Assembly (NCBI RefSeq): GCF_001194135.2
Contig: NC_069001.1
Span: forward strand, 3,700,735 to 3,764,734
Length of the DNA stretch: 64,000 nt
From: Octopus bimaculoides
Taxonomy: Eukaryota
Direction of reading: 5' to 3'
Below are positions 893 to 9,200 of the stretch, piece by piece (the first letter of the stretch is position 1; each line of letters begins with the position of its first letter). The notes below the pieces were generated by a model. That model saw nothing but the letters and a program-made list of their open reading frames with translations, was not told the origin of the DNA and made no database searches. Position numbers and translations under genes: made by a program.

Positions 893-2602
893 ATGGCTGC
901 TATAAACTCCAGTGACATTTCTCTGTCAGATATTGTCCGAATTGTCTCATCACTGTCTGATATCTGTGCAAGCTCTATAGGTCCTATGTGTGAGAAGACT
1001 CTTTTCACAACTTCTACTGGATTGGTGCAGTTTGTCACTAATGGCATTGACATTCTTAATGCTTTGCAGTTTTCCCATCCAGTTGCAAAGTTTGTGGTAA
1101 GTTCTCTTCAACATGTACATTCTGTGACGGGAGATGGCAGCAAATTATTTATTCTTTACATCACTGAATTAACACGGTTTGTTGAACTGCGAGTGAACTC
1201 TTCTTCTCAGACAAACGGTACTCAGTTCAGAGAAAATATTCGTAGAATATCTCAGGGATTAAGAAACTTTAAGCGTCTAATAATGGAATTTGAGTTCAGA
1301 AATCGTTTATCTCCTTTCAGTTCTATCAATTCTTCCAACTTTTTACTAAGCTGTTGCCATCTGAAACAAGTTTGTAAATCAGTTTTATTGAGTTCTTTGT
1401 CTGACAAAGAATCAGTTTATTTCTCGTCTCTACTCATTGATTTTCTTAGTTACGGTGTTGAATGTACTGATTCCTTACATCAAGCCATTGACTTTACTAT
1501 TAAACACTTTGATGTATTAATTCACAAAGATATTGGTCATTGTTACAGTTCTTCAAAGGTTCTACCTGGAATACTCATACCATGTGAAGGAACATTATCC
1601 CATGATCTATCATCTTCCAAAGAGGAAATTGTATCAGTCATTTTGCAGAATTTCTTAACATCTGATGAAGATGCAGAAACAACAGAAGCCACGTTTACAA
1701 TAACAGAGTTTTATGAGTTCAGTTCCTTACTTGCCTTCCAATATCACCAATGTGAGGCCTTCATCAAACAATGTACACTAAACAATGTAAAACTAGTTTG
1801 CTGCTGTCATGAGATTCCAAAATTTGCTGAAACTTTGTTCCAGCAACATGGCATTTATACTATTTCTTACTTTCCTGAAGAATTCTGTGAGTATTTTCAA
1901 ACTGTAGCCAAAAAGCAACCTCTTTCATGTATTAGAGATTCTCTCTGTGATAGTTCACTAGTTTCATTTGGTTTACATAAAAGGATTGTCATAAATGGTT
2001 CCACGTATCTTCAAATGACGCTGCTATCTTGCCCACTTTTGGTAAATGTCTCTTCCAGTCTTATACTCACAGCACCAACGTTAGGTATGGTTCACAGCTT
2101 ATCCCAACAGATCTTTAAATGTTTGAAATCTCTTAGAATGTGCTTCGAAACATTTCAAATTCTGCCATTTGATCATGAAAGTATTACTAATGAAAACCTT
2201 ACTGTAACAGCGCCAACCCCTTCTTCAAATATCTTTACCATTCCTGCAATGACTTTCCAAACCAAAATGTTGCAATATAGTCAGGAAAGAACTTTTAAGA
2301 ATATATCTCATGATGATGGTGATGGTGATATTCCATGGGAAATTCTTGGTGATACATTTAGATGTGTCTGCAGGAAAGTCTGTACATCACAAAAATTTAG
2401 TCCAATTCAAATTCAGAATTGCTTACCCGAGCCTGATGACATAAAAATGAATAACAATAATTCTGAGGAATTCTACAAAGACGGAAGCTGGTTACCATTA
2501 TACACAGAGTTTTATATCCTGCATGCTTCACTCCAAGTGGTGATTCAGCTTTTAAATATGGACCAAATAGTCAAAGTGAAAAGCATTAAAAAAAATGTTT
2601 GA
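893..2602 (+). CDS. BBS10: Bardet-Biedl syndrome 10 chaperonin-like protein (569 aa, single coding exon)
   Basis: The N-terminus (CASSIGPMCEKTLFTTSTG...ILNALQFSHPVAKFVV...HSVTGDGSKLFILY) matches my recollection of BBS10 (GDGAKTFIIF), a degenerate group II chaperonin ATP motif. The C-terminus LQVVIQLLNMDQIVKVK is BBS10-like. A splice acceptor ttttcag at 825-831 upstream of the ATG implies a non-coding first exon. Confidence 0.88.
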   Translation: MAAINSSDISLSDIVRIVSSLSDICASSIGPMCEKTLFTTSTGLVQFVTNGIDILNALQFSHPVAKFVVSSLQHVHSVTGDGSKLFILYITELTRFVELRVNSSSQTNGTQFRENIRRISQGLRNFKRLIMEFEFRNRLSPFSSINSSNFLLSCCHLKQVCKSVLLSSLSDKESVYFSSLLIDFLSYGVECTDSLHQAIDFTIKHFDVLIHKDIGHCYSSSKVLPGILIPCEGTLSHDLSSSKEEIVSVILQNFLTSDEDAETTEATFTITEFYEFSSLLAFQYHQCEAFIKQCTLNNVKLVCCCHEIPKFAETLFQQHGIYTISYFPEEFCEYFQTVAKKQPLSCIRDSLCDSSLVSFGLHKRIVINGSTYLQMTLLSCPLLVNVSSSLILTAPTLGMVHSLSQQIFKCLKSLRMCFETFQILPFDHESITNENLTVTAPTPSSNIFTIPAMTFQTKMLQYSQERTFKNISHDDGDGDIPWEILGDTFRCVCRKVCTSQKFSPIQIQNCLPEPDDIKMNNNNSEEFYKDGSWLPLYTEFYILHASLQVVIQLLNMDQIVKVKSIKKNV

Positions 2603-3751: not shown

Positions 3752-6245
3752 CTAGATGACAAGAAGAAAGAAAAAAAATTTGTCAAATATTTTGTCAGGT
3801 CAAACAGAACTTTCATTAATAAGATAACAGGATAACACTGTAAGAAGGATAGAAAGGGAGGAGAACGAGAAGAAATAAAATAGAATGAAATGAAATAAAA
3901 CAGGATAAGATACAATAAAGTGGGGGAAATGAAATGAAATAAAGTATAAAGCCTGTCATGAAATGCATATTGTAGCTGGGTTTTCATCCAACAACCATTT
4001 AACTAAAAAAATTCAAGTATTCTATCAAACAGTTTCATCAAACAACTATTTCCTGATATCTTGGTCATGCCTAGTTGTTTGTCCAACAATTTGAGCTTGG
4101 ATACAAAACACCATCACACACAATCAAGCATTCTACCAAAGAGTTTCATCAAACAGCCATTTCCTCTAACATACATTAATAAATGTAAGTGTACGTACTT
4201 GAATTACATCATGGCTACGTTGATACTGGAGAATAGAGAGAAATAAATGCCAAATGGAAAATTCTGGCCATAGAACATTCAAGAAGGATAAACAGCTGAA
4301 ACTGCTCTGAAATTAGAAAAAAAAAAACTGAATCAGAAAATATCATCCTCATCTTTATTCTTATTTGGCTTTTCATGCTTTTTGGGTTTGATAAAATACA
4401 GAACCATTAGGTGAAACAAACACTGCAGCAAGGTGGGTGGGTAGGTGGGTGTATGGATTGATTGTAGGTAAACGAGGTTACTTACCTGCCAAGCAAGGAA
4501 GCCACTGAGTCTCACTTCACCAGATGTTCGCACTACAAGATCAGGGTTGGGAGATCTGCCACTGTACATGCAGTTTTGGAGAACCTCTTCATCAATATCA
4601 CTGCATCAAAGATAGAAATATTTGTAACAACCACGCAAAAAACGTTGACAACACAACAGTTTCATATGGAATTCTTTAAAAACTTGAAAAGTAAACATGA
4701 CAACTGTATTGGACTTGACTGGATTACTTCTGTTCAGTCCATTGAAGGTTGGAGGCCTCAGCATGGTCTTTCCACCAACCACAATCTGATGGCTTAGTGG
4801 TTAGGGCATTTGGCTCACAACTGTAAGGTGATGAGTTCAATTCCTGGTGACATGTTGTGTCCTTGAGTAAGACACTTTATTTCACATTGCTTCAGTCCAC
4901 TCAGCTGGCAAAAATGAGTAGTCTCTGTATTTCAAAGGGGCCAGCCCTGTCACACCCTGTGTCATGCTTAATCTTCATGAGAACTACGTTAAGGGTACAC
5001 ATGTCTGTGGAGTGCTCAGCCACTTGCACGTTAATTTCACGAGCAAGCTGTTCCGTCGACCGTATCAGCTGTCACCCCTGTCGTCGTAACCGACGGACTG
5101 CTCCATATAATATATACCTTACCTTGTTTTGATCAGTCCTAGCTGCACAGCTTCAGTCACTTCCTTCAAAACACAAGTTATTTCCTCTTGGGAGGAGTAA
5201 GCAATACAGATGTTCAAAATGTTCCTGCAAAATTCAATGTTAGATTCTTGGTTACAATTATTTACAAGTAGTTCAAAAGCAAGCTTCTTACCACACAGCC
5301 ACGCCTACCTCTATGTTCCAAAAGTTTTCAATGCCCCACAAAAATTTTAGTGGGTACACTTGCCCCCTTTGTTCCTGAGCATATAAATAACAAACCATTG
5401 AAGGAACTCTGTATAGTGGTTGATCTGCTAGAAACAGCAGCCGAATCCTGTTAAATCACCTCCTAACGTCTTTAAAAAGAAAGAGCATATAGAAAAGTAG
5501 ATAGGATGGTCATGGCTAGAACACCTTCAATCCAATTTCTGAAGAACCAGGGCTGATTTGGGGTTAAACAACAAGCGTCAGTGGTTGTTCAGCCTGGTAA
5601 AAATCGCAGCCAAATCCCTCTCAGATCAAACTCCCACCATCTCCAACAACAACAACAGAATGTCAGTCATATGAACTTCGATGTGGTCTCTCAGCGTACT
5701 AGAAATAGCAGCCAAATCACTCCCCGAGTTTTAAAATGACAGTCAAAGCTAGAACTGTTTTGATCCTATAGTTGCGGGTATGAAGATGTGATTAAGAAGC
5801 TCACTTTGCAAACCATTTAGTTTCGGGTTCAATCTGACTGTGCGGTACCCTGGGCAAGCGTCTTTTACTATAACCCAGGACCAACCAATGCCTTGTAAGT
5901 GAATTTGATAAAAGGAAGAATGTGGAAGTCCGTCGTGTGTGTGTCTTTTTGTTCACTACCACTGCGTGACAACCGGTGTTGGTGTTTTTACGTTCATGTA
6001 ACTTAGAGGATCGGCAACAGACGGATAGAATAAATACCAGTCTTAAAATAGATTCTCGCAGTTTTATTAACAGATAAAAGATATGTAATAATTAAATCAT
6101 ATTTATGCACTTTATCGAGTTTTGCTACGCGCAAAGGTTCCCCGACTCCGTGGTGCAAATAATGTTAGGGGACGCTGCCCTTAGGAGCGGGCCCGACGCA
6201 AGGAACTGAACAACAGCATAAGTAGTAGTAGTGGCGGTGGTAGCA

Positions 6246-6278
<33 letters not shown>

Positions 6279-9200
6279 GCGGTGAAAAGTCGGCAAGCAA
6301 CCATCGCTTATTTCCCTTCATTACACACAAAAGAAAGCAGGAGCAGCCTCTCTTATCTCCCTTCATCTCCACAGGAATGGTAAGATATCGGGGCAAGTGC
6401 GACAAGAGACGACAAAACACCAACCCTCCCTACCACGTCTCTTTCGAACTCTACGAATAATCTATTCCTATAGGCGTTTAAAAAATCACTACTCAATCAC
6501 AATTAGGTGGAACAATCGACAATTAAAGCAACAGTACAATTATCTTCGAACGTTTGTACGGTAACATTATGCAAATAAGATGCAACTATAATTTTATCTA
6601 CGCCGTATACTCCAAGTATATAAATAAGTGGCAGAGTAGTTATAGTCGAGGTCCGCGGTTACAGGTATTGATAACGTTCATTCTCCCTTTTCTCATTAGG
6701 AAGTGCGCGACTCAGTCTATCACCTTTATACAGTCTAGGCCTGTCGATCTTGCTAAGTTGATCCCGAATCCACCATTCGGTCTCTTTAACTTAAACCAAT
6801 GACCCTGTAGCGAACTTGACCTTACTTTTTGTTTGTTTTTGTTCCATTTTCTCCATCAGATGAAACCGCTTCAAATTTTCGGTTTTGCGCATTCGTTCAA
6901 ATTCTTCAGATTATTTTTCATTTGTAGCATATGAAACCAGATGGTGATGGGGATACGTGGAGGCCTTCATCACTATCAACAAAGGAGGACTTTAACGCGG
7001 TCGTAAAATCGTCATAAAAACATGGTTGGATTGCATTTGATCGTAGGGCTGTTGACTCAGGGCTGACCTGGGGTTACACAACAGCAAAGGACATTGAACT
7101 AATGAAGCAGCTTCTTCGGGTTCGCTCAATCTGCTAGAAATAGCAGCGAAATTTCCCTCAAATTGCATTCTAACGTCTTTAGAAAAAGATAGTGAATAAG
7201 ATGTAATCCTGGCGAATATCTCTTATCTTTTACTCGTTTTACTTGTTGGACTGCGGCCATGATGCAGCATCATCTTGAAGGGTTTTAGTTGAACAAATCG
7301 ACTCCAGTACTTATGTAAATTCTGGCAATGATTCTGTCGGGTTTTTTTTGCTGCCAACCTACCTACGAGGACATGAACAAACCAGCAACGGTCGTTTGTG
7401 TGCGTGAAACAAACACAAACACATTATATGTATCATTTAGCCAAATTGCCACGCGGTGGGGCTGAACCCGAAACCATGTGGTTGGGAAGCAAGCTTCTTA
7501 ACCACATAGCCATGTCTGCGCATATATCTAAAAGAAAATGTGACACGTCGGTCTCGAATGGAACTTCTGATCATAGGTTGGCTGGATAAGGATGAGACCG
7601 AAGTGTCTGAACAACAACAACAACGGTAATGAAACCAAGGAAGTCTCTACGTAGTCATTCGACTGCCTGCTAGAAGTAGCAGCCAAATGTCTCTCAAATC
7701 GTAATCTTTTGTCTTAGAAAAGAAAGATAGGTCGGATAATGAGTTACTGAGTTGATCGTGTCGAAGAAAAATAAAGAACCACTATGTTGTCTTTCGATAT
7801 GTTAAATAGCAGTCAAATCTCAGTCAGTTCACACAATACTATATATATAGATGATGATGATGTATATATTTTAATGATACGTTAGATAGTTCTAGAAATT
7901 ACGAAGTATGAACTTATTGTTAAAACATACTTGCATAGATAAATATTCCGCTTTAAAATATAAGTCCAAAACAGAAGAATATATAATCATGAGTGAAAAA
8001 AGAAAAATAGGACATTAATTCGACACTCAGTGCGTCAATCGATCGCACACCATAAAGGTCAGCGGAACTTACAGAAACAAGCCAACACGCTCGCGGCATT
8101 ACCTTATACTCTTCCCATTCTTTAATCATCATGTTTTCTCATTCCATCCAATTCTCATACACTTTTGCCATCTCCATCCAGTCTCCCTTTCTCTTCTTTT
8201 ACACTCAAGGCGCTAATCACTTTTTTTTATTGCCTTTTCTAGCTCCAAACCTGTTTCTTCCACTTTTCATTTCTTTGTAGTGTCATTTGAAATAATATAA
8301 AAAACATTTTTATTGTAGTGTTCTCCCTGTCATAACAGAGTGACTGACAGAATTATGGCATTAATTGTTGATTAATTGTTGATTAGTGATTGAGATATTG
8401 CTTACCTGGAATTGTTTTTGAAAATTGTGACAATTTCAGCAATATTCTCTCGGATATCTTTTGGAAGCAAACTCAGATTACCAAACACTCGAATACACAC
8501 TTCATTCTTCAATAATTCCTCTCTGAAATTAAATTAATAAACATTATTTACATTTGATGGATATTTGTCCTCATCTTGTTTGTTGTTAACACGTTTCGGC
8601 TGATGTACTCTCCAGCCTTCATCAGGTGTCTTGGGGAAATTTCGAAGCTGGGTCCTCATTGATCAGGTATTTTTCAATATTATCATTATTATACAGGTCA
8701 CTGCCTGGAACCGAACTCGGTTACACTTGATTACACTTCCACAACAGACAAAATATTTTAATAATTATAATTATACAATTTGTAATGATATTTAATCTTA
8801 AAATTATAATAGGATTTTTTAAGCATCAAATAGTTAGGAAGGTCCAACTGAGTAGAATAGGAACCAAAGGGGTCCATAGATTAAAAATGGTTGAGAAACA
8901 TTGGATTAAGGTTTGGGTTTGGGGTATGAAGACCTTGGATACAAGGGTGAAGAGAAGAGGAGAGAAGAATGTCTGAAGGTGGCATGAGTTCAACCAACTC
9001 TGAGGAGCAGAAGCCATTACAAAAACTCAAATTTTAGGTAACAATATAATTACATTACTTACTTCTCTTGCAGAAGACGTTTGAACCTTTCTCGTGCTAG
9101 ACCCATCAAACAATCCACCTCCTCCTTCGACCGTTTGAAGTTATCAATGCTGAAGGCATAAACAGTAACTTCAGTGATTCCAAGATTGTGGCACCAGTTC

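Follow-up and report, generated by a model that had tools for sequence, protein, structure and literature searches.

Whether molluscs possess Y RNAs is the question raised by a short unit that lies antisense within an intron of the DHDDS gene of Octopus bimaculoides. The unit (positions 6648-6830, plus strand) is part of a stretch of 64,000 nucleotides (nt) of contig NC_069001.1 (NCBI RefSeq assembly GCF_001194135.2, forward-strand positions 3,700,735 to 3,764,734), hereafter called the window, to which positions refer unless another sequence is named. It had been picked out as a candidate independent RNA polymerase III (Pol III) gene for a Y RNA or a stem-bulge RNA (sbRNA)-like RNA with a Ro60-type bulged helix (the original prediction). 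Y RNAs measure 100 ± 20 nt, and their Ro60 site is a conserved lower-stem helix with a bulged C and opposite unpaired bases; Ro60 homologues are found in most metazoa (PMC4726728). A 2009 survey of schistosome non-coding RNAs states that vertebrates and nematodes were at that time the only groups with known Y RNAs, and that lophotrochozoans had none (PMC2770079); a 2015 review adds insects and amphioxus (PMC4726728). Work on Y RNAs is extensive for vertebrates and nematodes, whereas those of insects and amphioxus are the subject of isolated reports. The results presented here make it highly probable that the unit is a Pol III gene of the Y RNA family. As judged from its position, sequence and structure, it is the octopod ortholog of a lophotrochozoan Y RNA-like gene that measures 90-112 nt elsewhere, with a loop that has grown to about 126 nt.

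Location and borders of the unit

DHDDS is encoded on the minus strand of the window. Its coding exons were located by tblastn at 10571-10386, 9208-9062, 8524-8414, 5220-5131, 4602-4441 and 4294-4199, and the top protein match was DHDDS of Octopus sinensis. Since the flanking exons (8524-8414 and 5220-5131) are on the minus strand, the unit is antisense in DHDDS coding intron 3, and the exon mapping thus bears out the placement proposed earlier. The features that define the locus are as follows.

8414-8524, minus strand: DHDDS coding exon 3 (host gene), by tblastn with DHDDS, exon order checked against the O. sinensis protein
5131-5220, minus strand: DHDDS coding exon 4 (host gene), by the same search and check
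6648-6830, plus strand: predicted transcribed unit, octopod Y RNA-like gene, by conservation against O. sinensis and Argonauta
6569-6576, plus strand: octamer ATGCAAAT, candidate upstream promoter element, kept in octopods
6617-6624, plus strand: TATA box TATATAAA of a type-3-like Pol III promoter, by sequence, spacing kept across species
6826-6830, plus strand: T5 Pol III terminator, giving a 3' oligo-U tail, by sequence, with a T-run at this place in every ortholog

The window was compared with the DHDDS loci of O. sinensis (L001) and Argonauta hians (L002). Regarding O. sinensis, the identity of the window DNA was 82-94% and that of the flanks of the unit 82-93%, whereas the unit itself differed by one substitution and one 1-nt indel (about 99% identity), both within a hairpin loop; divergence was seen in the 20 nt immediately upstream and in the sequence just downstream of the unit. 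Regarding Argonauta, the single alignable segment in the whole intron of 3.2 kilobases (kb) corresponded to window positions 6648-6829, i.e., from the first G to the T-run. The unit measures 183 nt in Octopus, within the 181-185 nt estimated before, and about 192 nt in Argonauta. In its octopod part, the cephalopod comparison that had been called for thus shows a unit with sharp borders and preserved terminal pairing in both relatives. A covariance model built from the three octopod units (R1) scored 228 bits on the unit and detected no paralog in the window or the two octopod loci, so that the unit is single-copy there and the many decayed copies that would indicate a mobile element were not seen in these sequences. 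The squid-like DHDDS match (P0004) consisted of intron-less transcript contigs only. When metagenomes were scanned with a conserved 19-mer from the internal domain, two places came up, neither of which held a unit under R1.

The TATA box starts 31 nt before GAGG. In the octopod, Lingula, Pecten, Haliotis and Gigantopelta units, the start of a TATA-like element precedes GAGG by 29-33 nt; examples are TATATAA in Argonauta (distance to the unit as in Octopus), ATAAATA in Haliotis (about 30 nt upstream) and AATAAATA in Lingula; in Patella, TTTATATAG occupies this position. Both the window and O. sinensis have the octamer ATGCAAAT at -79 relative to GAGG; an exact copy stands at -81 in Argonauta, where the surrounding intron is unalignable. 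The octamer may be a promoter element. Together, the TATA spacing, the octamer, the T-run and the conservation that ends at the unit borders support, at the level of sequence, an individual Pol III gene with upstream promoter and T-run, and both the TATA box and the TTTTT run were confirmed. Two outer pairs proposed in addition (GU 6645-6646 with AC 6824-6825) were found to be unconserved: G6645 is A in O. sinensis, and conservation starts from G6648. Positions 6645-6646 probably lie upstream of the transcript, and the start of the RNA is therefore most likely at 6646-6648.

On the plus strand, the octamer region (6568-6584) and the TATA region (6617-6633) also resemble each other, as an imperfect direct repeat of 17 nt (TATGCAAATAAGATGCA and TATATAAATAAGTGGCA) with a spacing of 49 nt.

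Terminal stems

The ends of the unit pair into a lower and an upper stem which enclose a loop.

6648-6655, plus strand: lower (Ro60-type) stem, 5' strand GAGGUCCG with one bulged C, by single-sequence and consensus folds
6817-6823, plus strand: lower stem, 3' strand UGACCUU, pairing with 6648-6655
6658-6665, plus strand: upper stem, 5' strand GUUACAGG, pairing with 6804-6811, register as in the gastropod, Pecten and Lingula units
6804-6811, plus strand: upper stem, 3' strand CCUGUAGC, by consensus fold and 12-unit alignment
6666-6670, plus strand: stem extension UAUUG, pairing with CAAUG 6797-6801 in both folds
6797-6801, plus strand: stem extension, 3' arm CAAUG, by both folds

Both the minimum free energy (MFE) fold of the single sequence and the consensus fold of the three species close the ends in this way. 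In the lower stem GAGGU (6648-6652) pairs with ACCUU (6819-6823); the bulged C is either 6653 or 6654, and the next pairs are C-G and G.U with U6817 and G6818, which gives a helix of six pairs below the bulge (GAGGUC/GACCUU, one of them G.U). The lower and the upper stem are separated by an asymmetric internal loop, to which the 5' strand contributes C6656 and G6657 and the 3' strand GAACU (6812-6816). GGUCCG (6650-6655) matches GGUCCg of the Rfam Y_RNA consensus, and ACUUGAC (6813-6819) equals its ACUuGAC. The substitutions in the terminal stems among the octopods keep pairing in the consensus fold (G.U to G-C, U.G to U-A and A-U to G.U); for example, U6823 is C in Argonauta, which turns G.U into G-C. 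In the stem extension of Argonauta, a U.G pair has become A-U through changes of both bases, and another pair no longer forms.

The original prediction is upheld here in most of its structural detail. Its coordinates were all correct on re-reading the sequence, the sequence and both folds confirm its end pairing, bulged C, upper stem and extension, and the C-bulged helix of the Ro60 type has GGUCCG and ACUUGAC exactly, one bulged C and GAACU on the 3' strand. The deviations that it listed (C at 6656, no GUG/CAC triplet, greater length) also hold. The octopus loop begins UAUUGAUAAC, and GUAUUG, suggested as a UUAU(C/U)-like motif, is unconvincing as UUAUC.

Orthologs outside the cephalopods

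Orthologous units of 90-112 nt were found in Haliotis, Patella, Gigantopelta, Pecten and Lingula, all of them antisense in DHDDS intron 3. They have a TATA element upstream, GAGGUCCG at the 5' end (GAGGUACG in Pecten), UUGAC(C/U)U at the 3' end (UGGACCU in Pecten) and a T-run. The nesting common to molluscs and a brachiopod is therefore probably older than the split of those lineages.

The unit of Haliotis rufescens (L010:23553-23650, 98 nt) was found by the pattern GGTCCG...TTGAC...TTTT in the DHDDS locus and matched the full Rfam Y_RNA model with 26.4 bits (E = 0.0024). Regarding Patella vulgata (L012:31999-32098), the score over the full model was 25.1 bits (E 0.005). Gigantopelta aegis (L013, CM027793.1) has five intact copies at 12322-12421(+), 17050-17154(+), 21474-21575(-), 26047-26147(-) and 28751-28850(-) and two decayed copies at 13177-13263(+) and 28311-28394(-), all seven within DHDDS intron 3. 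Three of the five intact copies matched Y_RNA (33.4, 30.0 and 24.4 bits) in a 24-kb scan with 4227 Rfam families. Two pairs of copies have near-identical promoters and some copies are inverted, a sign that entire gene units were duplicated locally. In copies 2 and 4, a U-A pair of the upper stem has become C-G, which is a compensatory change.

A covariance model built from seven gastropod units (R2) was used to find more distant members. The Pecten maximus unit (L009, LR736842.1, 15358-15469(-)) scored 32 bits (E = 3e-6); its site is a variant, GGUACG...CUGGACC versus GGUCCG...UUGAC(C/U), in which the bulged-C site is altered on both strands. The unit of the brachiopod Lingula anatina (L015:4871-4962) scored 27.7 bits (E = 4.7e-5). 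It begins UCGAGGUCCG, exactly as the octopus unit does, and carries GGGUUAUC, in which UUAUC is present. Neither the Pecten nor the Lingula unit matched Rfam Y_RNA; the best, weak Rfam match of the Lingula unit was the nematode sbRNA family RF01656 (ceN72-3_ceN74-2, 17.1 bits, E 0.46).

Two further candidates were rejected as false positives of pattern searches. One was window 27843-27913, returned by a simple Y-RNA pattern. The other was a dispersed repeat of about 128 nt in Patella, which starts with GGTCCGATATGCGCG or GGTCCGATATGCGCGAATATCGAAAGG, ends with CCTTGATATACCATATTTT and has no TATA box or stem. This repeat, probably a SINE-like element (short interspersed element), fills the DHDDS introns of Patella (L012, OW026349.2, e.g., at 10123, 10455, 10810, 11145, 40217, 40546 and 48083, minus strand).

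Link between the octopus unit and its orthologs

Because R2 misses the octopus unit (see below), the link to the shorter orthologs rests on position, sequence and structure. Regarding position, the host gene, the intron, the orientation and the distance from the TATA start to GAGG (29-33 nt) are common to all units.

Regarding sequence, the lower-stem 5' strand GAGGUCCG is identical in 11 of 12 units from eight species, the Pecten unit having GAGGUACG. GGTCCG occurs five times in the window (both strands) and GAGGTCCG only once; in 396 kb of octopus, mollusc, brachiopod and annelid DHDDS loci (both strands) GAGGTCCG occurs 14 times, 12 of which are units. A two-block weight matrix was built only from the non-octopod units and run over both strands of the window. 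The top score, 23.5 bits, fell on 6648/6803 and the runner-up reached 15.0 bits; the maxima in 40 shuffles were 9.6 ± 4.0, the largest being 20.3.

Regarding structure, a plain MAFFT alignment of the 12 units aligned the ends column for column and gave eight pairs, the bulged C, two pairs, a 3'-strand bulge of four columns and ten pairs. In this structure 91.3% of the cells were paired, versus 39-56% with the 3' partners slid by 1-3 columns. Double changes were found in nine pairs, a number reached by one of 500 shuffles, and compensatory changes in seven of the ten upper-stem pairs. The octopus strands GUUACAGG and CCUGUAGC fall in the same columns as the gastropod upper stem and supply several of the double changes, e.g., U-A in gastropods versus C-G in octopods and Lingula. 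The stem covariation that had been asked about is thus seen across the 12 units, with the octopus helix in register.

The DHDDS-intron-3 lophotrochozoan Y-like gene is defined here by antisense position in that intron, a TATA box about 30 nt upstream, the 5' end GAGGU(C/A)CG, the 3' end U(U/G)GAC(C/U)U with T-run, and an upper helix in fixed register. Recovery by R2 excepted, the octopus unit has the features of this gene. The octopod RNA is a lengthened version of an ancestral gene of about 100 nt, a point that goes beyond the original prediction.

Internal domain of the octopod units

The octopod RNA differs from the shorter units in its 5-bp stem extension and in the internal domain that lies between the arms of this extension.

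6671-6796, plus strand: expanded internal domain of 126 nt, in place of the shorter loop of the other units (whole units 90-112 nt)
6677-6697, plus strand: pyrimidine-rich tract UUCAUUCUCCCUUUUCUCAUU, read from the sequence
6708-6746, plus strand: predicted hairpin, CGAC/GUCG plus GUCUA/UAGGC, containing ACAGUCUAGGC, by consensus fold
6757-6790, plus strand: predicted hairpin, core CCGAAU (6764-6769) with AUUCGG (6775-6780), by consensus fold

The domain is single-copy in the window, its folding stability is ordinary (z = -0.77 and +0.43), and it matched no Rfam family (6560-6900, E ≤ 10). The pyrimidine tract is kept in the three octopods save for one base and may have a role in protein binding. 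The hairpin at 6708-6746 is invariant in the three octopods and therefore offers no covariation evidence. ACAGUCUAGGC resembles the gastropod loop motif AUAGACUAGGC, and its Argonauta version AUAGUCUAGGC matches the AUAGACUAGGC of Haliotis and Gigantopelta at 10 of 11 positions. In the hairpin at 6757-6790 the core stem is invariant, the loop measures 5, 6 or 10 nt across the three octopods, and of the two basal pairs one is changed on both sides and the other on one side. The domain, with its pyrimidine tract and two or three predicted hairpins, hardly varies between Octopus and Argonauta. One reading is that the octopod lineage added a binding module of its own to an ancestral Y RNA, in which the pyrimidine tract and the added hairpins would be the obvious candidates for the binding of lineage-specific partners.

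Weight of the evidence and alternative explanations

Several results weigh against the assignment to the Y RNA family. The Rfam scan of the whole window at gathering thresholds returned nothing, and that of 6560-6900 (341 nt) at E ≤ 10 returned no Y_RNA, sbRNA, vault, 7SK, RNase MRP or tRNA match to the octopus unit. The unit thus falls short of the Y_RNA gathering score of 38 bits, and the gastropod orthologs that match the model, with 24.4-33.4 bits over its full length, are all below it as well. R2 did not recover the unit from the window with filters on or off, the top matches being a palindrome (11384-11451) and weak noise; the likely cause is the loop longer by about 85 nt, which probably exceeds the length limit of the model. 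The unit measures 183 nt versus about 100 ± 20 nt, its upper stem (GUUACAGG/CCUGUAGC) and loop are without GUG/CAC and UUAUC, and C6656 stands in place of the consensus A, by which one A-U pair of the Ro60 site is lost. The MFE z of -1.05 is ordinary, so folding energy alone proves nothing. The DHDDS loci of Saccostrea, Solemya, the annelid Owenia and Branchiostoma yielded no unit (in Branchiostoma, DHDDS intron 3 is only about 380 nt long). Within the octopods, the core of the internal domain (6673-6760) is identical to Argonauta at 84 of 91 positions (92%), versus 87% and 74% for two stem segments, and the folds of the domain are mostly prediction because only three octopod sequences are at hand.

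Owing to the Rfam threshold, the size and the absent GUG/CAC and UUAUC motifs, the unit is named here a Y RNA-like, divergent variant and not a certified member of the family. The GUG/CAC motif of the upper stem and the UUAUC motif of the loop are determinants of the DNA-replication function of vertebrate and nematode Y RNAs (PMC4726728), and in view of their absence no replication role is proposed for the octopus unit. The identity first put forward, a Y RNA or sbRNA-like RNA, has gained from the Y_RNA matches of the orthologs, the weak sbRNA match of Lingula and the covarying stems; the Rfam comparison with the Y_RNA, sbRNA and vault models, which had been called for, gave no match for the octopus unit itself, nor did it reveal a match to another family at E ≤ 10. 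On the comparative evidence, the feature is real, and the original prediction is supported in its main points and extended by the orthologs.

Among the alternatives, the one that survives best is an RNA which derives from a Y-like gene and is still a conserved Pol III transcript, yet is no longer a partner of Ro60; its stem would be kept for stability or export, and the 126-nt domain would have a new function through base-pairing or another protein. This would be in line with an internal core more conserved than the stems (92% versus 74-87% to Argonauta), with the loss of the A-U pair beside the bulge through C6656, with the missing Y_RNA match, and with C. elegans, in which sbRNAs were not found in ROP-1 immunoprecipitates (PMC4726728). 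It is nevertheless considered unlikely: the three octopods have all preserved GGUCCG and ACUUGAC as well as the bulged C and the asymmetry of the 3' strand, and changes in the lower stem keep pairing, such as that from G.U to G-C.

That the unit gives no discrete RNA, and is a conserved intronic regulatory element of DHDDS or an old mobile-element insertion that became fixed, is very improbable. The unit is indeed always found in the same DHDDS intron, as such an element would be; its conservation is bounded, however, by a TATA box at fixed spacing and a T-run, its stems covary, and in Gigantopelta whole units were duplicated with their promoters in both orientations. It also shows neither target-site duplications nor terminal inverted repeats, a tRNA-like head is missing, and no further copies turned up in the window or the two octopod loci. 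Neither kind of short element fits: for a tRNA-derived SINE, ARAGORN found no tRNA and there were no extra copies in the window or the two octopod loci, and for a miniature inverted-repeat transposable element (MITE) there were no flanking direct or inverted repeats.

A third alternative, which has hardly any probability, is another Pol III family (vault, 7SK, RNase MRP or U6atac) with a convergent likeness to Y RNAs. The octamer GCGGUUAC at 6655-6662 resembles the 3' half of box A of human vault RNA. In Argonauta, however, it reads GCUGUUAC, and the box B-like CCCGAAUCC forms the 5' side of a hairpin that is conserved. Vault RNA homologs are reported in two lophotrochozoan lineages (cited in PMC2770079), and a length of about 180 nt is atypical of Y RNAs; on the other side, no Rfam family was matched at E ≤ 10, and the top Rfam match of the positional orthologs in gastropods is Y_RNA, not vault. 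Taken singly, vault RNA (RF00006) was rejected as box A and box B are unconserved and there was no model match; 7SK as there are only scattered GAUC motifs, the unit is far too short and no model matched; and telomerase RNA as there is no template complementary to TTAGGG. The unit also has neither the RF01656 model match nor the UUAUC of a nematode sbRNA. Finally, that the pairing and the motifs are a chance find in 64 kb, as the MFE z of only -1.05 might suggest, is counted as already refuted and of negligible probability in view of the orthologs in seven further species, the conserved borders, the stem covariation and the motif statistics.

Proposed mode of action

The preferred explanation, a Y RNA-like gene with an expanded loop, would work as follows. 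A single-copy Pol III gene, nested antisense in DHDDS intron 3, would be driven by the TATA box (at about -31) and the octamer (at -79). Transcription would begin at or shortly before G6648 and end within the T5 run, so that the RNA would carry an oligo-U tail such as La binds. As the comparison shows, the ends of the RNA pair into the Y RNA architecture, i.e., lower helix, bulged C, asymmetric loop and an 8-bp upper helix with a 5-bp extension. By analogy with the Y RNAs of vertebrates, nematodes and bacteria, the lower stem with its bulged C would be bound by the octopus ortholog of Ro60, and La would bind the U-tail, as in established Y RNA biology (PMC4726728). The loop may be a platform that recruits other proteins. 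No paper linking TROVE2 and Octopus was found in the searchable literature.

A bolder proposal, which we hold to be rather doubtful, is that the octopods turned a Y RNA of about 100 nt into an RNA of two modules. The Ro60-binding stem would have been retained, and the nearly invariant new domain, about 126 nt long, would link Ro60 to a partner or target peculiar to cephalopods. It is further proposed that the nesting in DHDDS reflects a functional coupling of Pol III transcription with host expression rather than inertia.

Other features of the loci

Adjoining DHDDS, the window holds an uninterrupted open reading frame (ORF) of 569 amino acids (893-2602, plus strand), the O. sinensis counterpart of which (L001 23490-25211) carries the Pfam domain Cpn60_TCP1. 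It looks like an intron-less gene of the chaperonin family, possibly a retrogene. About 800 nt upstream of DHDDS exon 1, at 11384-11451, lies a near-perfect palindromic hairpin of about 64 nt (AAGAUAUCUUGGCACUAUCACG...CGUGAUAGUGCCGAUAUCUU); this is the spurious match of R2, on both strands.

A large WD40 gene (Pfam BRWD1_N and others) is found head-to-head with DHDDS in scallop, oyster, Gigantopelta, Solemya, Lingula and Owenia, at the start of the respective loci (L009, L011, L013, L014, L015 and L016, minus strand), and also in squid-like transcript contigs (L003-L006). In Haliotis (L010), a large minus-strand gene without recorded Pfam domains takes the position of the WD40 gene. The WD40 gene and DHDDS are an old gene pair. 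The locus of the oyster Saccostrea echinata, which is without a Y-like unit, has a tRNA gene (L011 9592-9664, plus strand; Rfam tRNA, 54 bits) about 340 nt upstream of the DHDDS start codon.

Novelty and significance

No description of a Y RNA from a mollusc or another lophotrochozoan was found in the searchable literature, in agreement with the original statement that none is well described; subscription journals were mostly outside the scope of that search, so that an earlier report is possible. Three points appear to be new: that molluscs and brachiopods have the family, that its genes are nested in DHDDS intron 3, and that the octopods have a form of double length. The results give molluscs and brachiopods a defined family of Y RNA-like genes, the members of which can be found antisense in DHDDS intron 3, and provide an unusually old example of a Pol III gene nested in one intron of one host gene. 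The octopod variant, doubled in size, has an added domain under strong constraint. Questions opened by the family are how far the recognition between Ro60 and Y RNA is conserved across bilaterians, and which functions a Y RNA loop can evolve.

Comparison with known systems

The vertebrate Y RNAs (Y1, Y3, Y4 and Y5; RF00019) share with the octopus unit an upstream TATA-type Pol III promoter, an oligo-U 3' end, a lower and an upper stem, GGUCCG/ACUUGAC, a single bulged C, extra unpaired bases on the 3' strand and a pyrimidine-rich stretch in the loop. The octopus unit differs in its length (183 versus about 100 nt), in the C for A after GGUCCG, in having two pairs below GGUC versus four, in the absence of GUG/CAC, UUAUC and an Rfam match, and in a loop that is structured and strongly conserved. 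The vertebrate genes form a cluster, whereas the octopus unit is nested in DHDDS.

The nematode sbRNAs and CeY (RF01656) are likewise stem-loop RNAs of invertebrates that are made by Pol III and have a bulge in the lower stem, and the Lingula ortholog aligns weakly with them. Unlike the sbRNAs, the octopus unit has no sbRNA model match and no UUAUC, and it is longer than the RF01656 model (130 positions). Vault RNAs are similar as short Pol III RNAs with paired ends and a possible upstream TATA box, and an 8-mer of the octopus unit resembles part of their box A; the unit differs from them in that its box A-like and box B-like segments are not conserved and the Rfam Vault model is not matched, and its orthologs match Y_RNA.

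The bacterial Y RNA-like RNAs (Y RNA of D. radiodurans and YrlA), which are said not to be homologous to the vertebrate clades (PMC4726728), differ from the octopus unit in that their tRNA-like module is absent from it and the added octopod domain has no homology to them in sequence or structure. They resemble it in combining a Ro60-binding stem with a large structured second domain, which in bacteria tethers an effector. By analogy, this second module would be the closest functional counterpart of the expanded octopod loop, and if the two-module reading were true, the octopod RNA would be an animal counterpart of the effector module of the bacterial Y RNA and YrlA.

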